Shown here piece after piece: positions 17,521 to 64,000 of a DNA stretch of 64,000 nt (positions are counted from its first letter, which is position 1; the number at the start of each line of letters is the position of its first letter). Source of the stretch: Takakia lepidozioides (taxonomy: Eukaryota > Plantae > Bryophyta); contig CM060732.1 of the NCBI GenBank assembly GCA_030704615.1, forward strand, positions 19,592,001 through 19,656,000, written 5' to 3'. The translations under genes were made by a program, and so were the position numbers. The notes below the pieces were generated by a model. That model was not told where the DNA came from. It worked only from the letters and a program-made list of their open reading frames with translations, and ran no database searches.

Positions 17521-19986
17521 ATGGAGCTGCTACCCCCTGCAGCCTCGCTCTCTGCGTCGCCCTCTCTGGCACTGAAGCGCCCATGTAGCAACCCGTGTTC
17601 TAGATCTTCGAGCCGAGGGGTGGCGCTGGGTTTCGCCATCCCTGCGTCCAGTGTGGGGAGGTCCAACACAGAAACGGGCGAAGGGTGGGAGGCGTGTAAG
17701 AATGCGTGCAGATCACGTGCGAGAGTCACTTGCGTTGGGGGAAATGACAAGCTGGTATGGCGGTTTGATGAATTGCTTTTTAGAGGGCGGTAGAAGCTTC
17801 GTATGACTCAGGGTCTGCCTAAGAAAAGACATGGCTAATGTAAGTAAAAATATCTTTCTTCAAGTCTGGAAGACTATAGAGAGACATCCTAGTTTGGCAC
17901 TTTCTGTAAGGAAAAACAGTATGTCAGAGTTAAGTTGGTTTGCAATCTTTTCACTTCAGCTTGGTTTTGGGAGTCTTCAAAGGTTTTTGGTCTCATCTCG
18001 GTTGTCTAGGAAGTGATTTCATCAAAGGGAGCAAATACGCAAATACATTGAAGGTGCAGAGTTTGCATAAACACTGAGAGGGACATTGAAGCCATTGTAA
18101 CTCGAGTTCTCCTGAAAACAGTCATGCATGGATGTAACAACTCATCAACTCACAAGAAAGAGTATGATGTTTTATTACAAGGTTGCTCCCAATGCCTTGA
18201 TTGGATGTCACTGGCTGGAAGAGATAGCTTAAATCTTGGTGCAGAAAAAAGTCCGAACTCTTTCTGCTGGCTTTGCAGTGGATTTCAGGATACCTGTATT
18301 TTCATGTGGAAGGGCACACTGTCAGAGCTACATTGTGCTATATTCAGTAGAACGTATCTCGCTTGGATTGGTGTACACTTATCTTGTGTACACCAATCCA
18401 AGTTTATGGTGCACCATACACGTGCACCATACACGTTTATCTTTTTGGGGGCCTGGCTTAAGGAATTTCTTTTCTGGTGTTGTGAGTTGCCTATGATGTA
18501 CTTTTGAGGGGGTAGTTCCCACATGATATCGACCCTCTCGGAACTGCTTGTGCCCCTTGGGAAAGGAAACTCAGCTGGAAATTTCATACTGCTTGTGCAT
18601 GTGGCCTATGTCAGGGCACTGAGTATGTACATACAGTATAGACATATTAGAAAACACAATTGTTCATTCCAGCATGGCTGCTCAAGCCATCTCTTTGGCT
18701 GCAGAGAGACTGTGTTTGCCAGAGCCTTGGGCCCTGTTTGAGAGAGAATGTACTCATAAGACGTTGTTCGCCGTAGACCCGGCGGCCAGTTTGAGCGGAA
18801 CACAAAGGGACAGAAACTACCTTTGTCGGGGCGGTAGTATGACTTACCTTGAAACATACCCAGTTTGAGAGAATGTACTCAGAAGACGTTGTTTGCCGTA
18901 GCCTTGTGGCCATTGACCCCACGCCCAGTTTGAGCGGAACACAGAGGGACAGAACCTACCTTTGTCAGGGGCTGACGCCAGTAGTAAGATTTACCTTGGA
19001 ATAAACAATTGATCCTGGTTTTCCAGTTTGAGAGAGAGAGAGAGTTGGATTTTACCTGGCACTTGAATGGCTCACACACATGACCTTTCAGGTGATCGGC
19101 TTTCTCCCTCTCTGCCCATCTAAACTGCCTATGGGTTATAGGGATTCGAGAAGCATGCTCAAATTACAGGTTTTTTCTTCCTCGTTTCTCTCTCCCACAG
19201 GACATCCATCCGTTCCTCAGGGGTCCCTCCGGGTCCCTACAATTGTCAAGGCATTTGTTTTTTCTCCAACTACTACTGAGCTATTATGATTTTTTTCTGG
19301 TGAATGCAGGATGCTGCTCGCAAAGCCGTTGAGACCGCACTAGGGGAGAAGAAGGATGCATTCAGCAAGTGGGATGAAGAGATAAAGAAGAGAGAGGCAG
19401 GTGGCGGCAGCGGCGGTGCTAGAGGAAGAGGTAGAGGTTGGGGTGGTGGCGGTGGTGGTGACAGTGGGGAAGCAGGGAGTGAAAGCAATTCCTGGGAAGA
19501 AGCCAAGCAAATATTCTTTGCCTTCACCGGATTGGCAGCCCTTGTGAGTCTTTGTTTTTGCAAAGTGATGTTGTGGTCAGTTTATTGATGTTCTGGGTTT
19601 TTAAGAACCTTTCTGGAGCTGTACCTGTACAAATTGTATGCCTATCAGCATTTGTTTTAGCTTAGGGGAAAAGTAAAAATGTAGCATTGCATGCAAACCT
19701 CACTTTCCTACAGATCTGTGTGAAGTTGATATTAAAATCTTGTCCGATTGATCACTCGTGCTCAATTAAGGTGGTGTTGTGTCGCGCGGGGTGGCAGTAT
19801 TTGGTTCTTACGAAGGGAAAGAGCATGCTGGCGTTTACCTTGAACTCGGTTCTCTTTGTGCTGCGGGGATTCAAGCGCCCATCATCATACACGGCTCCGA
19901 TAGGGGAACAATCGCTTGGGCCAGTGGGTGCAGACGGACTGGGGCATGCTGAAAGCAATGTGATCAATAAGTGGGGCAGGGATTGA
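17521..19986 (+). CDS. Conserved plant uncharacterised Gly-rich membrane protein with a probable plastid transit peptide (3 exons, about 218 aa)
   Basis: Exons 17521-17754, 19310-19543 and 19798-19986 have phase-0 GT-AG junctions. The protein has a Ser/Arg-rich N-terminus, ARKAVETALGEKKDAFSKWDEEIKKRE, a Gly tract, a TM segment and C-terminal VINKWGRD, resembling a land-plant family as I recall it. Confidence 0.85.
18737..19008. repeat. Two tandem copies of a dispersed 130-150 bp repeat in intron 1
   Basis: GAGAGAATGTACTCA...TTACCTTG(A/G)AA occurs twice, with reverse-complement copies at about 61347-61483 and a partial copy at about 24543-24588. Confidence 0.8.
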
Positions 19987-37459: not shown

Positions 37460-40125
37460 ATGGGGTCGGGCAAGCCAAAGCGAAAGCGGAACGGCCCGAA
37501 AGATGATGATCATGGTGAGCCCGATGGGGGCGACGTGTCACCGAAGCGGCCATTTGAGGAAGCGATGCATGCTTTTGAAAACGAGGCCACTCAAGAACGG
37601 GAGGAATCTGAGGAGTCAGAGCCCGAGGAATTCCTGAGAACTCCGACAGACCAACAGATGCATCCCATGCCAGCAGCCTTTTTGGGAAGGGTTGTTGGCA
37701 TAGTTTGGCGGGACGTTGAAAGACGTGTTGAAGGCGGCTAATGTCACTTCCACTAAGGCAAAGTTTAAGGTGAAGCCTAAGGAACCCGACACCTTTGAGG
37801 GCGTCCGAAATCGGAAGGCACTCAACACCTGGCTCTTGGAGCTAGAGCAGTACTTCCGGGTGGCCAAGTTGAGTGACGAGGATCGGGTGGAAGTGGCTCC
37901 CACCTATTTGAGGGGCTATGATCAACAATGGTGGCAAAAACGCCTTCACGACCGAGGTCCAAACCCGGAAACCTTGAACTGGAGTGGGTTCAAGGAACTT
38001 ATGAAGAGACAGTTTGTGCCCCTCAACGCGTCCTGGCTCGCCCGGGACAAGATGAGGAATTTGAAGCAAACGGATAACATTCGGGGATATGTTCAGGCTT
38101 TCAATGTGCTGTTGCTCGAAGTTGTGGACATGGTAGAACCAAAAATGGTCTTCAACTTTGTGGCGGGACTGGCCCCATGGGCCAGGCAAAGTTGGAGGAG
38201 AAGCCACCTAAGACTTTGAACGAGGCAATTGAGAGGGTTGAATGTTTCTCGGATGTCCCTAGGGGCGAAAGACAAGGCTGTACGGAGCTGAACCACAAGA
38301 AGGCCCGGCGGGAGGGTGACTCCTTCCGACCGGAAAAGAAGTGGGATAGGCCACGCGGTGACAATGGCACGTGGAAATCGAAGGGAGGGCCTTCACACGT
38401 CAAGGCGGCACCCGGTGCTCCGAAAGTAAAAGCAGGTGCGACGGCTTATGGCGGACAGAAGGCGACCTTCGATGGAGTGAGCTTCAATTGCGGGGAGCCC
38501 GGCCACATGGCCAAGAAGTGCACGAAACCCCGATTATTGAACATGACTCGGGCGACCACGGAGCTGTCCAAAGATTCAATCAGCCGCTTGGTGGAGGCGG
38601 TGGTCGCCAAGACTTGCAAGGTAGGCAACTACTTTTGTGAGTTGTATCAGGAAACTGGCGCCTTGCGTAAAGGAAGTCAGTTAATGTTCGTGGATGGGAT
38701 AATTTCCAGAACTAACGTGTCGTTGTTGGTGGATACATGAGCGTCGCACTCCTTCATGACACCGGCAACGGCACGAAAGCTGGGGATCTCGACAAGTGAC
38801 GTGGGGGCCTCTATTGAGGTGCGTTCTGCCAAAAGAGAACCACAATTGGCGACGAGGTTGACGTTCGATGTTCCTCTTCAACTAGGGAGTTAGGAGGGAT
38901 GTGAGAACTTAACCATTTGCGAGATCGATGGAGTGGATCTCATTTTGGGGATGACCTTTTTGAGCAAATCCGGAGCGGTCATAGATAGCCGCAAGAGAGT
39001 AGTCTCGCTGTCATGTGGGAATGGTGCGAAGTTTTACGAGTGTCGAAAACGCCCAAACCCGTGGGAGGGCGAATAAACCTTCTGTCAGCAAGGGAGTGGG
39101 CCGTGGAGGAGTCACACGAGCCCCAGTGTTTGTTTTACGTAAGACAAGTGAAAGGAGAAGGCGATGGGGAGCCGAGCCCAGATTGGATCAAGGGGATCTT
39201 GGAGAAATACTAGGATGTGATGCCGGAGGATTCACCAAGCGGCTTGCCACCGCGAAGGGGAGTTGACCACAAGATTGAGGTGATGCCGGGATCGGAGCCG
39301 CCTACCAAGGCGCCCTACCGGTTGAGCCACAGAGAGTTGGTCGAGCTGAAGACTCAGCTCAAGGATCTAATGTCAAAGGGGTATATCCAGCCGAGTAAAT
39401 CACCTTACGGAGCCCCAGTGCTATTCGCAGACAAGAAAGATAGAACACTGCGGATGTGTGTCGATTACAGGGCTCTGAATAAGGTGACTATCAAAAACCG
39501 GTACCATTTGCCAAGGATCGACAACCTTTTCAATCGGTTGGCAGGAGCGAAGTATTTCAGCCGGATCGATTTGCGCTCCGGCTGTCATCAAATTCGAGTT
39601 GCGGAAGGAGATGAGGAGAAGACCGCGTGCATGACAAGGTATGGTTCATATGAGTTCTTGGTGATGCCTTTTGGGCTCACCAACGCACCCGCAACCTTTA
39701 GCATGCTGATGAACAGCCTTTTCCAGGAGTGGCTGGATGACTTTGTGATCGTGTACATCGACGATATCTTGGTGTACTCAAAAACAAAGGAGGAGCACCT
39801 GGAGCACCTCAAAAGGGTGTTCCAGGAATTGCGGGAAGGGAAGCTGTATGCCAAAGCTTCAAAGTGCGAATTCGGGGTCATAAAAGTAGAGTTCCTGGGG
39901 CATGTGATTACACAAGATGGGATCAAAATGGATGACAGAAAGGTGAGGGCGATCTTGGACTGGGAGCCTCTGATTTCGGTCCCGGGAGTGCGATCCTTCC
40001 TAGGATTCGCCTCTTATTACCGAAAGTATGTGAGAAATTTTGTCAAGATCGCGGGGCTGCTGTCAGACTGTCTGTGTAAATCCAAGGTATGGGTATGGAA
40101 CACCTTTTGTGGCCAAGCTTTTGGG
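37460..40125 (+). pseudogene. Ty3/gypsy gag-protease-RT, frameshifted, truncated before RNase H and integrase; no 3' LTR
   Basis: Gag PKEPDTFEG...WLLELEQYF...LKQTDNIRGY, knuckle SFNCGEPGHMAKKC, protease LLVDT*ASHSF, and [13 protein letters not shown]...[13 protein letters not shown]...[10 protein letters not shown]...[11 protein letters not shown]. Confidence 0.95.
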
Positions 40126-40754
40126 AGATAACCATACGTGCGGGAGACATTCGAGATTGGTGGGAGAGAGAGCAGTTTTGCCGCGATCTGGGAGGGCATT
40201 GGAGTCAAAGAAGGTCCAGGTTTATCCGGCTCCTACAGGTTCTATGGGTGCCGGAGGAGAACGAATTGTATGACCGACAACCGATTGAGAGACATTTGTT
40301 GATGTCCGAACTGGAAGATGCTATAATATGTCAACGCCGAATGAATGATGCGTACGAGGTGGCTTATCGTCGAAACGACACAATGATTAGGGACAGGGCC
40401 CGCGAGAGGCAGTTGGAAAGTTTCAAAAGTACCATCAAGGCAGTTGTAGAGAAATGGAGGCGACTATGGACAGACTGTTATCATCGTGTTTCGGGGGCTG
40501 TATTGCCGGATGTGGACGACCTCGTTGCCGATTTGCATGCAACCCGAGCACTTGTTTTCGATCCACCTCCACCACGTCGTGAGAGTAAAGAAGAAATTCA
40601 ATTTTCGCTGCGAAGTAGGCGGATGCAGGCCAGAATTGATCACATGCCATTGGGCCCCTCATTGACCACGAGATCACAGTCGCAAGCTCTGGCAATTGGC
40701 AGTGCAAATCAGGTCACATCATCAAATTCCACATCCTCAGACAGTGACAACTAG
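40126..40754 (+). CDS. 5'-truncated orphan ORF (about 210 codons) joined to the broken gypsy RT
   Basis: Long stop-free frame with protein-like composition beginning at the retroelement breakpoint; no recognisable family. Confidence 0.4.
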
Positions 40755-44290: not shown

Positions 44291-45740
44291 CTACTCCGTC
44301 CTATATACGTCTTTCGGCTCAGGCCAATTGAATGGCTTGCCCATGAACCGAAGTACTACATGGGCTAATGTGACTCTCTCATTCTTGTTGTTGTTGTACA
44401 ACCTTTGTAGCATTGAATGCCAACAACCTCCCGTAAATTGGTCCTGGAACATACTTTGATCATAATGAGCACCGCCATTTATTTGTACCGCTATCTTCCC
44501 AATGGCAAAGGCCTCCGACGTCATGTCCTGGGGGGGGGTGGCATTCGCATTGAAAATCGATGCAATATCTTTTTCCACCCACCATCTTTTCGCGAGTTCC
44601 CGGTCCAGCTTGTCTTGGTTTTCAAACTGGTACGGCGAGACTTTGCGTATGCCCAATGGGGTGGCTAAGCCCCAATCACACACCCCAATCTTGATCTCCT
44701 CGGTGCCATCTGGAAAATGCGACAAGATGTTGTCGGGAGAAAAGTCGTTGTGCAGGACACCGTTCTTGTGGACAGCATCCATGATGCACACCAGTGCCCA
44801 TGCAAGTTTACTGCGCATTTTTTGGAAACGAAGTAAACGATCGCACTCCTGGAACTCTTCTTCCGTTCCCTTTTGTTCCAAAATCACCATGTTGTCCGAA
44901 TCGTTGCCCCATTTTCTGTCAAGGTTCATCATGTCGCGTATTGTCCCCCCATTCCACTAGCGAGTGTAACCCTCTACCTTACGTGCATTCACAGCAAAAT
45001 ACGAGATAACACCCGGATGCTGGAACTTCACTGCCAAACACTCGTCGTTATGTTGTCTCAACGCCTTTTTGAACTTGGGTTTTTTTTCCCGTTAGCTCCC
45101 AACGCTCTGTTATTCTAGAATTGCCAACAATCCTACAGTGATGGACCTTAGCATACCCTCTTTCTTTGTAAGGGCCAATCTCTATCACCTTCGCACTAGA
45201 GTTCAAGTAATAAAGACCAGTTGTGTCTCCCCCGCTCGATGACCCCGCCTTCCAAGGGACAACCCTAGTCCGGCGATGTGAATTCTGACTTGCCGAGCAA
45301 GCCCAATACTCAACACGCCGCATTAACTCAGCTTCGGCGGAGGGCACTTGACCCTCGGTTGTTCTACCCTTCCATGTCTTCATTAGTTGCCTCAAATTCC
45401 ACGTGGCGTTTTTCGCTCTACTTTGGATCCACCGATTGAACTTCGGTTTGTCCCTGTCCGCCGTCCACTTAGCCCCTACCAAAGCGTTTGTCATTTTCTT
45501 CTCTATATTTTGCTGAAAAATCTGAAACCCCTCCCATCCATGCCTGACATAAGCACTCACCAGCCTCATCATGTCCCTACCCTTGAAATAATCCACTACC
45601 ACTTCTTTCACCCTATCCAAGGCATCCGGTCCCGGGTAGTCTAGCTTGTTGACTTGGCTATCCAGCTCGTGGGCACATTTTCTCTTCCTCCGCCCCCGAG
45701 ACGACCTCGCCCCAGAACTTGAATTCACAACCTCCGACAT
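44291..45740 (-). pseudogene. Intronless divergent protein kinase (HND catalytic loop, DWG) with a frameshift and a stop
   Basis: RGYAKVHHC (subdomain I-like), frameshift at the poly-T run near 45080-45088, HPGVISYF, TAG at 44957-59, VHKNGVLHNDFSPDNIL, IGVCDWGLA and SEAFAIG. Confidence 0.85.
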
Positions 45741-51288: not shown

Positions 51289-52739
51289 GAATCTGAAGGG
51301 TATAAATAAATATTAAAAATCCTCATTTATACCCTATGGGTATAAATAAATACCGCGTATAATTAGGTATATTCATTTATATTGTTTATCTAGTTATATA
51401 TTCAAGATACCTATATCAGTGATATACTCAAGAATGCTTGCAATATTGATAAAATAATCCCTACATACCTACATAACACAACTTTAAGAGCTCCAACCCA
51501 ACCACATCACATCTCCTTTTCATATTGTTGCCAAAGGGTTTATGAAGACTGGTGTTGATTCTAAAAGTTCGCACATCCACTTAAATCAGGACATATGTAA
51601 ATAGAATACTTCATCCATATTTATAGATGAAACATGAAAATGCTGTAGTTCATCCGATCAAGTTGGTGCGTGTTTGACAGGTCAAGAGATATATTGTTCA
51701 GTAGTGGTGCAACTTTAGAGTTTCGTCTAGCACGAGACTTTCTAACAGAGGTGCCACCTGGATTAGTGTGTACAATTAGGGATCACTTTACAACCAATTA
51801 CAACAAGGCAGGGCTTGCATGAATTCAATGCGTTTGTTTTCTTTGTGTCGCTTTGCAAGATTGGACTCACGTATGTTAAGGGCGGGAGAATTATGGATGC
51901 TCGACGTGTGTTCAACATAATGTCTTGATGATGTTTGATTACATGGAATATAATTATGGCTATTCCCCTCCAACTCTACAAGGAAAAAGAAGGGGGAAAT
52001 GGCTATTCGCAAGGGGAAATGGCTACTACCGACTAGCAACGCAAGTAATAAGAACCGAGTTCACTACTTCTTATGAGGTTATTATATGTAAGTTGGTTCT
52101 TTCAGCGACAATCTTCCGTCTCCAAGCTAATAAACGAATTGTGCTGCACAATGTGTGATATTGGAGATGGATCTTATATGGATTGGTGAGCAGGGTGCTC
52201 TAAAGGCTGGTAAGCTTGCACAATGAAAAACATGCATGGGGCACATTTGGATATGTTCGTTCATATATGTATTTTGTTGGCCCCTTGATGAAAAGGTTCT
52301 ATTGTACTCATTTGAACTAACATCTACATTCAACATATTGAACAACCTGATTGTAATTTAAATTGATGTTCTCAAGTGCATAACATTGGTGTCGAATTTG
52401 GCATACTAATTGCAAGCTCTAAATTTGACCTTCAAACATGTATCACACCATGGCAACTCCTTGATCTCAACATTGCCCCAACTGGATTATCTCCCTCTCA
52501 GCACAAGGTCCTTTGACAGGAACAACCAATTCAGTCTGTACGAGATAATAAAACAACAATGTAGTGAGTAGACTACCCATGCATACTTAGATAGAATGTA
52601 TGATCATTGCATGGTCATATGCAACACACAAGGTCTAGCATTTCCAATAAATACTAGCACAACTAGCACGACTAACGCAATTCACACGCTTCAACACTTG
52701 AATCCATGCAGCAGACATGCATGTTCGAGTAACATTGTA

Positions 52740-53849: not shown

Positions 53850-54075
53850 GTACAGATAGATATCACGCTTACATATATAGATATATACCAGGCATAAATA
53901 TCAGGCATACATAGATATCTAGATACATATCACGCATGTATGTCATGGATATCTTCATAGATATCACGATATCTCCAAAGATATCATGTGATATCTTCGT
54001 AGATATCTAGATAGATTTCACGCAAACATATCATTCATAGATATCTAAGTAGATATCACGCATCTGTAAGTATAG
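53850..54075. repeat. Low-complexity cluster of (T)AGATATC motifs
   Basis: About a dozen GATATC/AGATAT motifs in about 220 bp. Confidence 0.7.
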
Positions 54076-54139: not shown

Positions 54140-55024
54140 AAGAGTCCTTGTGGGACTCTTTTAACGGTTAGGTATCGCACATAAACAATCCCCCAAGGAC
54201 TCTTCGAACTGTTACATGTTCAAAGACATCTACAGGGGGACTGTTTATGTGCGATATCGCGTAGAAAGATTCTTTTTTCTCTCCATGGATGTAAGAGTTT
54301 CCCAAGATTTTATTTTATTTTATTTTTTCTGGGGCACAAGAGAATAGATTGAAATGGAATTGCTTTGGTGCATTTCCTATTCCTTACATCTGTCTGAAGA
54401 GTCCTTGGGGGACTCTTTGAGTCGTTAGGAATGACATATGGGGGGAGCATGTGCAATGGTATGGTATATCCTAACAGTCATCATATTGTATTCAAAGTTG
54501 AAATTAAAACCAAATTGAGGGCAACATACAAAAGGTAAAAAAAAATTGCAACCACACATGCCCATGCAAACTAATTTGTATTGCTCATAAATTAGTGAAG
54601 GTCTTTGTAAGGCAGGATTGTAACAAATGGGAGAAAAGCTTGATGCCATGACAAAAACTGAAGAAATCCTGCATATTGTACCTTGTATGCTGATCAATCG
54701 GGGAGAAAGAGTCCCCCAAGGACTCTTCGAACCGTTAGGTAACAAAGAGTCGGGCAGAAAGAGTCCTTGTGGGACTCTTTTAACGGTTAGGTATCGCACA
54801 TAAACAGTCCCCCAATGACTCTTCGAACTCTTACGTGTTCGAAGAGTAACAGTTCGAAGAGTCCTTGGGGGACTGTTTATGTGCGATGTCGCGCAGAAAG
54901 ATTCCTTTTTTCTCTCCATGGATGTAAGAGTTCCCCATGACTCTCTTCTTTTTCTGGGGCACAAGAGAATAGATTGAAATGGAATTGCTTTGGTGCATTT
55001 CCTATTCCTTACATCTGTCTGAAG
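54140..55024. repeat. Left repeat block of AAGAGTCC-N5-GGACTCTT hairpins; 54140-54399 is duplicated at 54759-55024
   Basis: Direct sequence comparison. Confidence 0.9.
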
Positions 55025-56061
55025 CATTGCACATTATTCTACTTCTGGCAATATGCCTCGAGTGGTATTGCCCTTACAAGATTTTAATAGTTGGATTCAT
55101 ATCTTTATCTTCATGTGCTTGGCATTTTGTGGATTTTTAGTTGTGATTGAACCAAAAGTTACATGCACACATGCAAGAAGGTATGGATGGAGTCATCTTA
55201 TCCAATCTAATGATTCGAGGTATCCTCTTGATGAGTCCAGATAACACTGGTTTACTCTAAGAAATTTGCAAACATTTAGAGAGGAGGAAATCAGCTCCCT
55301 TCAGCTGAATGAACTTGGTTAAATGTGCTGCATTTAACACCTCATGTTGGCCTAGCTCATGTCCAGACTATGCGTCACCGGGGCAGGCCTAGGGAAATTG
55401 CAACTGCAAGTCCAGACATGCACCTAGAAACGGTGTACAGGGAAAAGGAAGTTATTTCTGCATGGTGGATGAGTATCACCCATTTGCATCACCAACAACA
55501 GGCCCAGACTTTGGGTTTCTCTGAAGCAATAATGAGGTACATCCAAGAAAGGGTCATAAGCTTACCTTGACTAGATTATATTGACCAAGGATCTTTTCTT
55601 CCCAAGCACACAAAGTAGCTATGGCTTCTTCAAGACTAGCTGTACTACCACCTGGGCCTTTCCCTGTGCTACCCCCATTTGCCCTGCATTAAAGAGTCCG
55701 AGCCTGTTGTAAGGTCGTAAATTCTGGTGATTTTTTGCAGCTATCTTTGATTGCATGTAGACTGCTCAGGTTGACGGTGAGATGAAAAGAAACATCCTCT
55801 ACCCGAAAACAAAGGAAATAAGGAAAGTTTCTAGTTTGTGTAGAAAAGGAGAAGTCAAAATGGGATCTTCTAAAAAGAGAAATATGAGAAAGTTTACCCG
55901 AAATATGACCAAACAAGTTGGTATTTGTTAGAGAGTTCGGGTCGGTGAGCATGTCTTGATGATTTGCTTATGTCAAAGATGTAAGACGAACTGCACCACA
56001 AATGCAGCTGTCACCAAGGTCTGTGCTCTTGAAAGTAAATTTGGTGGTCTCTATCTTGCAG

Positions 56062-56114
56062 GGACTGAAGCCTTGTTTGCTGATTTAGGCCACTTCTCTG
56101 TTCAATCCATTCAG
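56062..56114 (+). pseudogene. Isolated exon of a HAK/KUP/KT potassium transporter
   Basis: TTGCAG|...|GTAATT exon encoding (G)TEALFADLGHFSVQSIQ, the family signature. No other HAK exons were seen. Confidence 0.85.
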
Positions 56115-58061
56115 GTAATTGCCCTCAGCTAAATCTCTGCTTGACACAATTTCTTGAATGGCTCCACATGCTTTTGAGACGTCTTTTTGCCTTTCTTTGG
56201 GCATACAACACCTCTGCACCTGATCGTCGGGAACATGCATTCTTTTGAGCCAGTAAAAACTGCAATTTTGATTTATGTGAAGGGACCACTACCGGGTTAA
56301 TTGAAGTAACAATAACAACACAAACTGACACAAATGCACATATCCTTCTCATCCACAGCGGTGTCCGTTCATGCGAAAAAAACATCTGCAAACAACACAT
56401 TACAGTGAGGTCATGAGAGCCCCTTTACATTGGCAGTTGGAAGGGCTTGATGCAAGGATTTTGCTTTCAAGTGGGACAGATTATATACAATTGCAATTAC
56501 TTGGCATCCCAATCACTGTACTAGCAATGTATAATATACAATTAGTACCAGCTATTAAACACTTACATTTGTCCCTTCCATCAGGATTATAAGGAGCATG
56601 TGACGTGGCAGCAAAGAAACCCAACGTTCCAGCAGTAATTACTCCAGAAATGCCTGAGAGATTGAAGGAATGGCCATATTTCTGCGTAGCAAAAATCCTC
56701 CACCCATCTCAGAAGCACTTTTGTGTGGAGGAAATTTCCAAGAGTAACGTACCAGATTTCTGATTGATAGACTGAGCAAACAGATAGAGCACATCACACA
56801 AGGGGGACTCATGCATATGACAGGCAAATCTGATCCTGGAAGGCTTCATTGTCCCTGATGTATATTAGATATGGTACCCAGTGTGGAGTTGTGGTTATAA
56901 CAGACCTCATCAAAAAAGTGAGAAATAGGTCGTGCAAGTTCGTCCCGACATGTATTCACCAAAGCAATGGTGGTGCCCCTGTTGTTTTCCAATCTCAAGG
57001 TCAATAAACTTTGACGAAACAAAAACCTCACAGCTACATCCCAGTTCAGATAATATAACACCACCACTTCGACCTCAAGACTCGGAATTTGGTGCCTGTA
57101 AAATGTGAACTATGCATACTCAAATTCATATAGATGTGTGGTCTCTGTACCTTGTGAAACCCAGCTCCTTGAGCGCGTCATATGCGGCGCTGAAGAAGTT
57201 GCTGTCAACAAAGGCTAACGAGAAATACTTTGAGATCGTCTTCAAGGCCTCGGGAGAAGCCTGACGAGGATCCACTTGGGCCATTGTAACTCTTGGCTAG
57301 CTGCACTTCCAACCAGATTCAATAGTTTAAATAGGGAATTCCTGAAGAGAAAGAGACAAACAGTATGAATAGTTGCTCCTCTGCCTCAATCTGAATAGCA
57401 CAGAACAATGCAACGCAATGCATCCTAGCTTTGGGTTCTGTCTACATACTTCTGCAACCTCTGGCAGATCCAGGTGGAAATAGTTTCAACGGAATAGTCA
57501 GGGTTTGTGCTATCTCATAGGGGATTGCAATCTCTTCCACTTTTATGAAGGGATCACTTGTGATGATAGCCCGTGCAACATACTTACCACTTCCACCCAG
57601 AATGTTGTGGATAAGGGACGTAGTAGAAATACCTTGACCGGCTCGACTGATATGAGTATCAAGTGTTCACAAGATGGTTTCCAGACAAATAGGAAACGAG
57701 TGCAAGGGAAACCTGGAGAGGCCTTGATGTAACCAAGGAGTCGAAACTATCTGTCGACACTAAAAGGGGGAAAGGGAACAGGAAAAACATGCTTCGGAAA
57801 GGCAGCAATACCTTCTCCTAGCCATCGCTATCAAGGTCAGCAGCTGCCACACCAATGGATTTACTTTCAAGATCACGTAAGGGACTTCCAATGTCAATAT
57901 TTACCAATTCCTTGCCTGTCCACTGCAATCATCATCACCCTTGCATCAGCCAACACACTGTCTCATTCCAAGCTACATATTACACACTACCACTTTTGAA
58001 AACCTCATGGCAAATTGATCCACACAGACCACCTGGAATGTACTTACAGTGCTCACATATG

Positions 58062-60491
58062 TCATGCGGGTTGTATTAAGCGTTGAATTGCATAATCCGC
58101 GGCATGTAGTGCAACTTTCATAATTTGGGATTTATCTCCTTCGCCGCACTCCAAAAATAATTTGGACAATGCCAAACAGTCTTCAACATGTTCAGTGGAG
58201 ATGAAATCCATGGCTAGTTTCATAGATGCCAGCACATAACAAATTTCCGAGCAAAAACAATGGAAGCCACACATATTAGTGTGCGTATGCTTTTGGCATC
58301 TCTATAGATAATCATATATACATTTCCGCATCATACCTACTTTAAAGAATCATGTATTTGTCTTTCACTTGAATATACACAACACTGATATCATGGGATT
58401 GTAATCCATACTGACAAGTTTTGAACTTGATGCGGACAACCTGCTGGGAGAAGTACTGCTTCGCCCATTTTTTGAACGTGCTCCCATGGCTTCAAACCTG
58501 TATGTATTAGAAAAATGTATTGGTGACATCTACAAACGCGTATCATAATAACACACAGACCTTAATATTCATTTGCAAAAATGGTACATGCATAAGGAAG
58601 AGGTGTACTTGTTTCTTCCTGCAAAAGTTTCAACATGGATTTTTTTCAAGTAGAACTGGAAAGATAACACTGGAGGTTTACTAAATGGCTTTGGATTGTC
58701 GCCCTTTCGAATACCCAATAATTTTCTCTTGTGTTTATTCAAGAAGTCGTTCAAAGTGTCGACTGTGTTGGCAGGGAATATATGCCACAACGCTCCAGTT
58801 TCGGAAGGAACAATTGTTGTTGGAGTATGTACCATGATGTTAATCTGAAAGACAAACTTATATGAGTATAGTGAAGCAAATGAGCTAACTACTATAAGCA
58901 ACTTTAGGAATATAATCAAAGAACTAGAACTAGAAAGATTGTAAAGCACGGGGGTGATGAGCTCCTAATAGTACATACCGCATCGGAAAAGTCCATGTGG
59001 AGACATGTAATTGAATCACCATCTCCCTTCTCTTTTTGTTGTCCATATGCAATGTAGGCCTTTGGTCCCATGTCGGTTTTTTTAAGGCTACTAGGGAAAT
59101 ATGTAGTTAGGTTTAGAATCCCTTCCGGATGGGTATACTTTGAAATTGGTAAAAGATCTACAAATTCTCTATAATGAATGGGAAACACTTCTTCGAAACT
59201 GTTGTTAGAAGGCCAATCTTTTAGTTTTAATAATTCCTTCGGGATCTTCGAATCATATCCATCAATAAATGCTCCTAAAGTTAACTCTCGACTTGACTCC
59301 CAAGTAGAACATCTAATGATTGTAGGATTAATAGAGGTAGTATGTACATTAACCCTTTTCATACAAGTTCTCATTCCTCCGGGACTCCAATCTACCTTAG
59401 ATGAAATAGATACATCATTTATTACCACAGGTTCTTTCAAACGCCAATGGAGTAAGAAATGCTTCAATTCCGACTCTACACTATTTAATCTAGAAGATGT
59501 GGTAGTATATGACATTTGTTCACTCAAACACCCCTCCGAAATTGAACACATAGACATAGACATCTCGTGACCATACAAATTCTTGTGGTAATGGTCCTTT
59601 GAGATATTTTGTAGATACGACACTTTGTTAGGTTCAAAAAATGTCTTCATTACTGCATGTTCGCTGGTGTTTATACTACAACTATGCTTTAAGACCCCAC
59701 CATCATCAATTGACCACTCTTCATGGATCTTATTTTCATCTTTTAGCTGTAAATAACATGTCAAACATACTGCTTTATTTGGTTGTTTACGACATTGGAT
59801 GTGGAAGTCTATTAAAGAGGCTTCGCACATATCACTGCATAACAAAACAAAGAAAACAAGTGTTAGATTCAAACAAACCAACAAACGAAAGACATTGACT
59901 CAACGTATTATTGTGTAGACATACCATATGTACATGTAGTCTCCATCCAAAATTGCCATTTCCGGAGTATAGTGGCTATCACCTGCGCCCACAACAATTT
60001 AATTCATGATTGTTAAATCATCCCTACCATATGATCAATAGGAGAACCAAGATTTTCTTGAAATCCAAAGATCTACATATGAAGCAAATCATGTCATCTA
60101 TTTTTATGACAACAGAAGACTTACCAATTCTTGACCGTTCAATAGACAATACTTCTTGTTGCAATGCATGTAGTTCTTGGATTGGCTTGTACAATCTCAA
60201 CAAAATCTCCGACCAATGGAGTCGATTCTCTGCTTCTGTCAAACGCTTGGAAATTTCTTCTTGCTGGTTTCTCAAAGCCTTCAAGTTCTCTTCCAATTGT
60301 GGAATGAATGGTAAAGAATTTGAAGACTCGCTAGCATGAGATAAAGGTTGCACGATGGTAGCATGTCCTTCAATACACAAAACAACCTCCAAACATGAAG
60401 CTGGATTTGCTTCGGATACCCATACTCCAGGCAATGGTATTGTTTTGTTTCTTTTGTTGTAGCCATAATTGCACATCAACGTTCCACACAA
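58062..60491 (-). CDS. KDM3/JHDM2-family (IBM1/JMJ25-like) JmjC H3K9 demethylase; compact, with two apparent lesions (possibly a recent pseudogene)
   Basis: Exons ...-60125, 59982-59925, 59834-58979, 58844-about 58609, 58497-58412 and about 58230-58062. Motifs: [56 protein letters not shown]|[32 protein letters not shown]. One extra base in the T7 run at 58640-58646, and the last acceptor reads TG instead of AG. Confidence 0.9.
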
Positions 60492-61346
60492 TCACAGAAA
60501 CATAAGCAAACATTTCAATAGAATGATCGTCAAACAGACTTAACATAATGAAAACAAATAATATATAGCAAGCGTCCTTCCATCATCATATATGTTTGTG
60601 TTATATGAAATCATAACATACCTTGCAAATTCACATTTCTGTTTGCGTCTTGAAGAACTGAGTGTGCCATCAAAGAGTACTAAGGCCCCTGCCTCAGGTT
60701 TCATCAGAAACATACTATCAGGCAACGGCCTTGCGGTATGATGTGACATCTGATGGCGATCATAGTCACGTTTCAATTGTGGTTTCTTTAGCGGTCTGCT
60801 TTTATTGGTTTTCATGGATACAGGTCGGGTGCTACATTTCCAACATCGAAACATGAGAAGACGTGGATATTCAATGGGTACATTATGATTGCTATAATCC
60901 ACACTCTTCTGCAGATCTTCCATATCACTCGCGAATTTTTCTTTAGTATAGTAGAAACACTCATCTATTCCATTGATTTGAATCGTCCTCCTGTAGACAT
61001 AAATTGCTCCTACTTTGCTGCCCATGTACATGTGCACCACATTTATATGTACATTAGTTGTTTGAATGTAAATTTTTGCTCAACTCACAATTCAAGACAT
61101 TCTCAATGATCTAAAGTTTAATCCACAAGTCTTGACCCTACTGGATAAATCTGTTCTCTCACCCAAGAGACGGTCTCCTCAATTATATCAAGGGAATTGT
61201 GTTTGTACCTCTCTTTACCAACTTTTAAAGTATGGAGACTGAGCCAAAAGCCCAGGTCCTTTTGGGGCCTACTTATTGGGCATACCACACATACATGCTT
61301 ATGTGAAGGATTTCTAGAGGATGTCCAGAAAACTCGGAGCAATAGC

Positions 61347-61483
61347 TTATTTCAAGGTAAGTCTTACTACCGGCGTCAGCCCCTAACAAAGGTCGGTTCT
61401 GTCTCTTTGTGTTATGTTCAAACATGCTGGGTCAATGGCCACAAGGCTATGACAAACAACGTATTATGAGTACATTCTCTCTC
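61347..61483. repeat. Copy of the dispersed repeat found at 18737-19008 (opposite orientation)
   Basis: TTCAAGGTAAGTCTTACTACCGGCGTCAGCCCCT...GAGTACATTCTCTC. Confidence 0.85.
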
Positions 61484-62539
61484 ACTCATTTTGTTGAGGG
61501 CAGATTGATTGAGGCAGACCCCAAGGGCAGTTTCCGGATGCTCTAGGAGGACCCTGGTGGGCAACCTCTGCAACCGCCATCGTTGATTACTGTCCCAAGG
61601 GGCTGTATCCTTTGGGGCATGTTGTAGGACCAACATATGAAACCGAACAAAAAAATCCTAACCTGCTGTTGTTGATATTGTTGTCGTCGGCCATAACTCT
61701 TGTCGCCTCCTCACTCAAGGACACCTCAATGCAGGGATGTTGTTGTAGCCTTCAAACCTTCACGACAATGCCAGTTCAACTTTTGCATGAGGATGCTAAA
61801 CCCCAAAACAACTATTCACCAATTTCTTAGCCAACTAGACTGAAATTTGTCGGAGAGCCTACCTTTGAGCAATAAACAGATGCAGAGAGCAAATGGAGAT
61901 ACAACTAGCAAAATAACTGCCGGAGTGAACCCCTCACAGAGTGATTTGTCTCTTACAGCGACCAAAAGAAGGTTCCAGAGAGGGAAAGCAAGCAAAGATA
62001 AATTACTCTATGTAGTTGAAACCAAAGTATAATAAGAACAAAAGAAAACACTCAAGTGAAGAGAGAGAGATATTGTACCACTATAGTACAATTTCAGGAA
62101 GGGTAGGCACTCACCAACCTGCTAGCCAAAGACTACACTCTGCGAATTAATGTGACTAACCAATACACTCTGAAATTTAACATACAACCAACATACAGTA
62201 AAATGAAAACTTGGAGCTAAATTTGAGTTTGGAGTCTTGACAACGTCGATGAAGCAGGTTTTCTTGACAACGATGATGAAGCAGGTGGGCCCTGACGATG
62301 TCGTTGAAGATATTGTCTACTTATGGCGAGCCTAAAATGACACAACTAAAATGACACATAATGTTGAGTTGAACACTTACAAGGAAGAGAAGGCGAGCGA
62401 ACAAGTGATGCGCAGTGTCAATGCAGTGTCAAAGCAGAGTAATTCAGTATCCCAGGTAAGCTTTGCCCTGAGCACGTCGATGAAGCACCCGAAGCACCAA
62501 AGTCGCAAGCCAACAACATTTCGATGCTACTAAGAAGAG

Positions 62540-62612
62540 TGGCTATTCCGAGGGGGAAATGGCTATTCCCAGGGGGAAATGGCTAAATGGAGGGAGATTT
62601 GCTATTCCCCCA
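62540..62612. repeat. GGGGGAAATGGCTATTC tandem motif, also at about 51957-52028
   Basis: Direct observation. Confidence 0.7.
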
Positions 62613-62675
62613 ATTTCTCGCGCAAGGGCAGAGAGACAAAAGTGAATATGTGTATCACATGCGGTTCGCGCGGCG

Positions 62676-63000
62676 CGAAGAATCCTTGGGGGACTGTTTA
62701 TATGCGATACCTAACGGTTCAAAGAGTCCCCCAAGGACTCTTTCTGCCCGACTCCCCGTTACCTAACGGTTCAAAGAGTCCTTGGGGGACTCTTTTTCCC
62801 ATTACCTAACGGTTGGAAGAGTCATTGGGGGACTATTTTTCCCCGTTACCTAATGATTCGACGAGTCCTTGGGGGACTCTTTTTCCCCGTTACCTAACGG
62901 TTCGAAGAGTCCTCCTCGACTTAGAGCCTTTCCAAGCGAAGAAATGGTCCTTGGGGGACTCTTCGAAACGTTAGGTATCGGGGAGAAAGAGTCCCCGATA
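62676..63000. repeat. Right repeat block (AAGAGTCC-N5-GGACTCTT and TACCTAACGG motifs), inverted relative to the 54.7-kb block
   Basis: About six hairpin motifs alternating with (T)TACCTAACGG. Confidence 0.9.
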
Positions 63001-63399: not shown

Positions 63400-64000
63400 C
63401 GAACGAAAATCATTTGGATGGGCAACCATCCGTTGGCCCATTGAACAATTTTTGTTTTATCTCATATTACTCCGGGACCTTTTACATGGTACATTCAACA
63501 TACTGGCCAAGTCTCAAAGCGAACCTAAATCATTTCGATGGGCAACCATTCGTTGAGCCATTGAATGGATTTCGTTTCATCTCATATTAGTGCGGAACTT
63601 GTGAGAGGGTGTACCGATCATACTGGAAAAGTTTGAAAGCAAATAAAAATGATTTGGATGGGCAACCATCCATTAACCCATTCAATGAATTCTGGTTCAT
63701 CTGCTATTACTGTGGGACCTGTTGAACTGCGTCTCGCATGCACATGATTTTTTTTCCATTCTATTTTGGAATTGTATGTGTAACGACAACATATGTTACG
63801 TGCGTGCCAAATTTGGGAGTGAACAAAATTCATTTGGACACAAAACCACAGTTTCTTTCCTGTTTTGTACTCCAAACTTGATTTGTGTTCTATTACATGC
63901 AGTCTTCATAGAGAGTTCTGCAATAGTGAGCGAAGAGAACATTTCTTTTTTATTTGGTTTCATTTTTTTTTTGTCCAAAGTTTGCAGGGATGTAGCGGTG
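63400..64000. repeat. Diverged copy of the 120-bp GCAA-hairpin array and tail seen at 41205-41870
   Basis: Motifs near 63406, 63526 and 63646. The tail GTGCCAAATTTGGGAG...AAAACCACA...AACTTGATTTGTGTTCTA matches 41678-41767. Confidence 0.9.

Follow-up and report, generated by a model that had tools for sequence, protein, structure and literature searches.

VANDAL21 (Hiun), a DNA transposon of Arabidopsis, undoes its own epigenetic silencing through VANC, a factor that binds specific sequences, acts on DNA methylation and is not an enzyme of known fold. DNMT genes occur in retrotransposons, and the KDZ transposons of basidiomycetes, which Iyer and colleagues are said to have described in 2014, are reportedly associated with TET/JBP dioxygenase genes in many intact copies. 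Plant transposons of the Pack type (Pack-MULE, Pack-CACTA and their like) shuffle pieces of host genes. Here we describe an interval, from about 54.7 to 63.0 kb of a 64,000-nt stretch of DNA (the window) from the bryophyte Takakia lepidozioides, in which a gene related to the KDM3 histone demethylases lies between inverted repeat blocks, together with fragments of other host genes. An earlier reading of the sequence alone (the sequence-only reading) had presented this gene as an IBM1/KDM3-type demethylase of methylated lysine 9 of histone H3 (H3K9) that could protect its own element from silencing. We give about even odds to reading the interval as a Pack-type DNA element, non-autonomous and of low copy number, or as what remains of one, with a cargo that decays passively.

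The interval is bounded by two repeat blocks in opposite orientation. The left block (L2, 54697–55024, plus strand) comprises units u1–u3, one arm of an inverted repeat (54701–54825), a foldback (54793–54887) and an inner part that it has in common with a second, partial left-end block. The right block (62676–62996, minus strand) contains the other arm (62676–62800), tandem units (62753–62913) and an outward foldback (62872–62996). A repeat search recovered the arms as an inverted repeat of 125 nt (I1), 91 % complementary and with 7.85 kb between them, in agreement with the sequence-only reading, which had put the identity of the two blocks at about 91 %. This inverted match keeps the order of three different units, which is more than the similarity of one unit to another would give. 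Both end blocks are arrays of a 44-bp unit that holds an 8+5+8 hairpin (AAGAGTCC-N5-GGACTCTT), 3.7 copies of it being reported by Tandem Repeats Finder (TRF) at 62753–62913. That the blocks are built from such hairpins, as had also been proposed, is borne out by the motif AGAGTCC-N5-GGACTCT: with up to two mismatches it matches 13 times in the 64-kb window, against 0.11 expected from shuffles, and all 13 matches fall within 54141–54876 or 62679–62962, with none in the other 55 kb. Similarly, at least four copies or fragments of one end sequence lie within 9 kb, and the remaining 55 kb of the window has none.

Each block also possesses its own long foldback, with a predicted energy of -43.8 kcal/mol (z -13.8) on the left and of -47.3 kcal/mol (z -9.9) on the right. 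Both are near-perfect, with arms of 42–44 bp, and could yield hairpin small RNAs. A microRNA gene in the long foldback was considered and not accepted, the Rfam matches being sub-threshold and to generic microRNA-precursor hairpins.

What lies between the blocks is a mosaic of pieces from unrelated genes. Contigs from two DNA and two RNA-type runs of this species (X5 and X6 being classed as RNA by a guess of the tool) were aligned to 55500–61300. The cargo fragments are 90–98 % identical to expressed host transcripts, and these transcripts run on as unlike sequence past the fragment edges. Since the RNA contigs match and then diverge at the edges, the fragments are pieces of expressed host genes, taken with their introns and at different times. 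The first, on the minus strand, has an exon at 55565–55682 and an upstream exon from about 55897 (to 55950). RNA contigs of 4380 and 3157 nt match the former with 8 mismatches in 118 positions and join 55682 to 55897 with a CT..AC boundary; 55565–55950 has no identity in Pfam or PDB. It is followed on the opposite (plus) strand by a fragment of a KUP/HAK potassium transporter (56049–56117; Pfam K_trans, E 7.7e-05), which host RNA contigs match over 56059–56114 with 1 mismatch in 56, being unlike on both sides.

A third fragment, of an LCIB-like gene (beta carbonic anhydrase family), occupies 56157–57301 on the minus strand, with exons at 57150–57301, 56906–56977, 56567–56681 and about 56157–56203 and the introns between them. 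The piece 56484–56708 (minus strand) matches Pfam LCIB_C_CA above the curated cut-off (E 6.6e-07), and in PDB it matches LCIB and LCIC. A spliced RNA contig of depth 821 (run X5) shows 9 mismatches in 339 positions (97 % identical) with minus-strand GT..AG introns, and is unlike the window beyond 57301. Carbonic anhydrases of the LCIB type have been connected with carbon-concentrating mechanisms, and land plants do not usually have them; the host carries a highly expressed parent gene of this family. A HECT assignment for the neighbouring piece was discarded, as by Pfam and PDB the region is the LCIB-family fragment. Next to it, two exon-like pieces at 57423–57934 (minus strand) derive from the domain 2 of the largest subunit of an RNA polymerase: 57445–57666 matches Pfam RNA_pol_Rpb1_2 (E 6.8e-07) and, in PDB, Rpo1N and RPB1, and host RNA contigs match 57423–57610 and 57821–57924 at about 90 % identity. 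A Pol IV/V-like origin was rejected because Rpo1N and RPB1 match better than Pol V. Low-depth RNA-type contigs are 96–97 % identical over 57588–58005, an intron-like part included, and one of them joins 57302 to 57815, which suggests some transcription through a cargo copy downstream of the silent KDM3-like gene.

An inverted repeat, a motif confined to its two blocks and an intron-bearing mosaic cargo devoid of a transposase together lead to the Pack-type reading. The sequence-only reading had itself warned that the gene might be passive Pack cargo, and the mosaic of host gene fragments agrees with this warning.

The unusual passenger is the KDM3-like JmjC gene, whose confident part runs from 60450 down to the stop codon at 58062–58064 (58062–60450, minus strand). 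Its exons were analysed singly, the two bases of one split codon being added to one exon for the frame check. They are a first listed exon at about 60450–60125, whose 5' limit is uncertain because the sole in-frame acceptor is weak, a second exon at 59982–59925, and exons A (59834–58979), B (58844–58609), C (58497–58412) and D (58229–58062), all on the minus strand. Four introns are canonical GT..AG introns with consistent phases, and one of the junctions rebuilds the CxxC of a zinc finger across the intron. A 322-codon open reading frame (58916–59884, minus strand) matches only human KDM3B and JMJD1C in PDB (E 2.7e-15 to 5.6e-14), the exon at 58412–58497 matches Pfam JmjC (E 9.7e-07), and tblastn with plant KDM3 proteins covers the gene from 59833 down to 58077, that is, from the zinc finger to the C-terminus. 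A library search gave 785 matches at E<=1e-10, and the annotated ones whose names were checked are JMJ25/JMJ29-like or JmjC domain proteins. The four top library matches score high through several matching stretches, one of them having two JmjC stretches by Pfam; all that a representative library yielded were canonical members of KDM3, about 40 % identical. Judged by its sequence, the gene is thus a member of the KDM3/JMJD1 family, and the divergent, spliced KDM3 gene that had been described between the blocks is indeed there.

The iron site, also said earlier to be retained, is kept: the first ligands lie in T-x-L-H-x-D (LHMD) and the second histidine in PAGCPHQV, both aligned to invariant columns. 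Upstream of the JmjC domain, a putative zinc finger reads CDMC...HIQC across a canonical splice junction, its second cysteine pair being partly lost. Conservation follows that of the family, as 95 of the 158 near-invariant columns (at least 90 % conserved) are kept (60 %), compared with 30 % of the moderate and 19 % of the variable ones. Among the replaced core residues, TKLH has become TCLH, HPIHDQ has become PPVLSF and WEPMVMWR has become WSPGGMRT. A 179-codon open frame upstream (60543–61079, minus strand) is a possible 5' exon, joined to the next exon by a single weak in-frame acceptor; it has no relatives in Pfam, in the ESM Atlas or in the protein search. Protein searches with the 322-aa exon and with a 130-aa core piece gave no close relatives of the gene either, an exact-product look-up was blank, and so were metagenome scans by protein and by a composite of the hairpins.

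Two lesions interrupt this gene, both of which the sequence-only reading had pointed out. In exon B, a seven-base homopolymer (58640–58646, minus strand) has one base too many for the KDM3 reading frame, which breaks there; with one base fewer, the region translates into a 16-residue stretch. Before exon D, a CTG preceded by a normal pyrimidine tract stands where the CAG of the last acceptor is expected (58230–58231, minus strand). If an in-frame AG lying 60 nt upstream served as a cryptic acceptor, exon D would start at 58289 and the JmjC barrel would gain 20 residues. The well-supported contigs of the DNA runs, which differ slightly from the assembly and so probably come from another individual, list no indel at 58640–58646. 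This suggests that the frameshift is not an assembly error, although it is no proof. No RNA contig from runs X5 and X6 falls on the KDM3 exons (58022–60931).

The DNA contigs over the KDM3 part form two identity classes, of about 99 % and about 90 %. The gene is therefore present more than once, which supports the sequence-only reading on this point, in a total of only about 2–3 copies. The 90 % paralogue has exon indels of its own (+T after 59060, +GTAC after 59929 and -2 at 60317), and it joins 58345 to 57629, so that the last KDM3 exon is lost and the KDM3 part still adjoins the polymerase fragment. Its divergence is 11.7 % over 60605–60851, nearly all of which is the upstream open frame (the possible 5' exon), compared with 9.3–9.6 % over pieces that include introns. 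Exon divergence that is not below that of the intron-including pieces, together with the exon indels, points to a neutral decay of the two copies. The KDM3-like gene is a pseudogene both in this copy and in the paralogue. Neutral change among copies, which the sequence-only reading had regarded as speaking against its proposal, is hence what this pair displays; the earlier history of the gene was a selected one. The second sequence class has the order of the cargo in common with the first, its ends lying beyond the available contigs, and the LCIB part is covered by a single contig class, so this copy may have acquired the LCIB fragment later.

The age of the gene is suggested by a quick tree of the N-terminal half of the JmjC domain, in which it was placed among 153 plant and algal KDM3 sequences. 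Its terminal branch measures 2.86 against a median of 0.14 (about 20 times), longer than those of Cymbomonas (1.35), Diphasiastrum (1.03) and Spirogloea (0.52), and it lies outside all 153 rows with no supported grouping. The epithet IBM1-type that the sequence-only reading had chosen should be dropped, since the gene falls outside every plant clade and the IBM1 clade is reported to have arisen within angiosperms and to be specific to them (bioRxiv 10.1101/2024.01.08.574644). In spite of this divergence, exon A keeps 285 codons open. When neutral drift to about 43 % identity was simulated, exon A stayed open in 0 of 2000 trials; with the drift of about 5 % expected since the copies split, it stays open in 14 % of trials. 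A frame that is open despite such divergence indicates a long selected, fast-evolving gene that died only recently. With so long a branch and open frames, it is not a canonical KDM3 of the host that was captured recently, a point in favour of the sequence-only reading. The RNA contigs contain no expressed host gene at least 88 % identical to it. Until recently, the gene was a selected, fast-evolving and non-canonical derivative of KDM3, and it may have spent much of that time on a mobile element.

These observations can be assembled into the following scheme. A Pack-type element whose ends are arrays of the 44-bp hairpin unit would have taken up host DNA on two or more occasions. Its oldest passenger would be the complete-looking, intron-bearing JmjC gene of the KDM3/JMJD1 family, which had long evolved fast while selection kept its frame open. 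Pieces of the polymerase gene, the LCIB-like gene, the KUP gene and one further gene would have been added at different times, and the KDM3-like gene would by now be a pseudogene in both copies, drifting neutrally and silent in the sampled RNA. We infer that the repeat blocks are the termini of a transposon and that the duplication took place by transposition.

Several observations weigh against this scheme. At none of the candidate boundaries is there a target-site duplication outside the repeat units, the search giving repeat-internal matches only. There is no transposase in the interval, and none elsewhere in the window among the 20 tested of 36 open reading frames of at least 130 aa; the sequence-only reading had likewise seen neither a duplication nor a transposase. 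The ends are untidy. On the left, the block is doubled in direct orientation, 54140–54399 resembling 54759–55024 at 86 % overall with sub-blocks 86–100 % identical. The additional partial block (L1, 54130–54440, plus strand) holds one more hairpin unit at 54397–54440. On the right, there are extra units, the outermost one being present in three additional copies, and a reversed fragment. The sequence leaves the exact termini of the inverted-repeat ends undefined. The copy number, which was taken from contig depth and is inexact by nature, is so low that a segmental duplication could explain it. An LCIB fragment acquired after the duplication would require a mechanism beyond a single capture. 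The contig comparison covers 55500–61300, which lies inside the junctions between repeats and cargo.

A possible though doubtful alternative does without a transposon altogether. The interval would then be a decaying KDM3-like pseudogene with scraps of other genes in repeat-rich heterochromatin, spread by segmental duplication, and its flanks would be a local 44-bp array, or pieces of foldback miniature inverted-repeat transposable elements, inverted or independently inserted. The lack of a target-site duplication and the presence of only some 2–3 copies suit this view. So does the near-palindromic nature of the units, as arrays of such units readily give inverted matches, and so do the other tandem arrays on both flanks. 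Moreover, a 20-nt direct repeat, ATCGGGGAGAAAGAGTCCCC, brackets the entire interval at 54697–54716 and 62977–62996 (the last 20 nt of the right foldback), which together with the separate foldback in each block fits a rearrangement. However, local arrays do not readily account for a 125-nt match that preserves the order of three units, nor for a motif that is missing from the other 55 kb, and unrelated intron-bearing gene fragments flanked by inverted repeats are what classically marks a Pack element.

It is improbable, in our estimation, that this family of elements codes for an H3K9 demethylase of its own, which would erase H3K9 methylation at its copies and counter silencing of the CMT/KYP type, with this copy broken recently and intact copies elsewhere. 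What speaks for it is the history of the gene: a branch longer than those of the algae and lycophytes in the KDM3 tree, an exon A that neutral drift never left open in simulation, the preferential retention of near-invariant columns and iron ligands, and the failure to find a closely similar expressed host gene, all of which would fit an old selected lineage so far seen only in a repeat-bounded context. On the other hand, the two copies sampled are both broken and have diverged neutrally, the exons have no RNA, and substitutions affect 40 % of the near-invariant KDM3 positions, among them HPIHDQ and some of the zinc finger. Furthermore, relatives occur in no protein collection searched, and the link to a mobile element is itself unproven. 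In its fullest form, this view would have a bryophyte DNA-transposon lineage carry a KDM3-type H3K9 demethylase under selection for a long time, intact copies erasing H3K9me2 and the present locus having died recently, a history that we rate as unlikely. A working transposon-borne anti-silencing enzyme is, in any case, not supported by the sequence of the copies sampled. Of the role that the sequence-only reading had assigned to the gene, the family and the repeat-bounded setting hold, and the function is not supported for the copies sampled, given the mosaic cargo, broken copies, neutral divergence, missing RNA and the absence of both a target-site duplication and a transposase. It keeps a small chance for an unseen intact copy, because no other home has so far come to light for the long selected history of the gene. 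Very unlikely is a functional, lineage-specific host KDM3 paralogue whose frameshift would be a mistake of the assembly and whose splicing would rely on the cryptic acceptor 60 nt upstream. In its favour, homopolymer errors are common in long-read assemblies, the in-frame AG permits the alternative start of exon D and every other junction is canonical. Against it, independent DNA-run contigs lack a well-supported indel at the run, the exons lack RNA, the cryptic acceptor would lengthen the JmjC barrel by 20 residues and the paralogue is clearly decayed.

Beyond the cargo described above, the interval contains non-coding filler, from 61121 to about 62530, which begins with a very high-copy repeat directly upstream of the KDM3-like gene. 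The contig depth over this repeat is 64,000–154,000 from 61126, and many contigs start at 61121 or 61153. A 157-nt unit of it recurs, partly in tandem, at 18739–19023 with 73–83 % identity, and the repeat is also found in RNA-type contigs. A nested element with terminal inverted repeats around the LCIB and KUP fragments was looked for, and only chance-level repeats were seen. A Sola/ParB-type element was rejected, as palindromes occur at the ends only and there is no ParB-like gene. The tandem arrays that flank the interval, at 63400–63722, 53854–54062, 62540–62585 and 51980–52025, consist of a 120-nt unit (2.7 copies) and of units of 20–40 nt, and the 20-nt unit TGGCTATTCCCAGGGGGAAA is met again, in the same orientation, at a distance of 10.5 kb. 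The remainder of the window is rich in repeats. At 37716–40754, its plus strand carries Ty3/Gypsy genes for gag, a zinc knuckle and a reverse transcriptase, with gag and reverse transcriptase at 37.7–40.1 kb. An open reading frame at 44291–44932 (minus strand) contains part of a protein kinase domain, which Pfam Pkinase matches at 1e-06, short of its curated cut-off; this frame, too, is probably a gene fragment.

If the Pack-type reading is true, the locus is one more plant transposon that shuffles pieces of host genes; it is unsurprising in itself and guards annotation against a false call of a KDM3 gene. The unusual point is the passenger, a KDM3-like gene more divergent than its algal homologues, whose frame selection kept open until recently and which has so far turned up only in repeat-bounded, multi-copy settings. 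Within the literature covered by the search, no plant transposon is reported to carry a JmjC histone demethylase. An intact, expressed copy on a mobile element, if there is one, would be the first transposon-borne histone demethylase known to us, and would permit a direct test of whether transposons can erase H3K9 silencing enzymatically.

How does the locus then compare with systems already described? With Pack-MULE, Pack-CACTA and other Pack-type elements it shares the inverted-repeat ends, the lack of a transposase and a mosaic of intron-bearing, unrelated host gene fragments of varied age, most of which are decaying pseudogenes. It differs from them in having no target-site duplication and no terminus diagnostic of a superfamily, in ends made of 44-bp hairpin arrays, in its very low copy number, and in that one passenger is near-complete and comes from an old, highly divergent lineage. 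The best sequence matches of this passenger are the KDM3/JMJD1 (JHDM2) demethylases of H3K9me1/2, represented in plants by JMJ24–29, including IBM1/JMJ25. Like them, it has T-x-L-H-x-D...H in its JmjC domain and a C-terminal helix region; a putative remnant of the zinc finger (CxxC...HxxC) stands immediately upstream of the domain. Unlike them, it reaches only about 40 % identity in the JmjC core, has 40 % of the near-invariant positions changed, lacks the long insert between the barrel halves and has a reading frame broken by a frameshift and a lost acceptor, any demethylase activity being here a prediction from homology. With VANDAL21, the locus shares arrays of short motifs in the non-coding parts of the element and, as a concept only, a DNA transposon whose cargo would lift its own epigenetic silencing. 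However, the candidate is a homologue of histone demethylases that shows neither expression nor integrity, quite unlike VANC, and a binding of the hairpin arrays would be putative, by analogy. As in KDZ transposons, a mobile element would travel with a 2-oxoglutarate/Fe(II) dioxygenase or another enzyme acting on such marks, but the enzyme family, the element class and the kingdom are different, and in place of many intact copies Takakia has 2–3 decayed ones.

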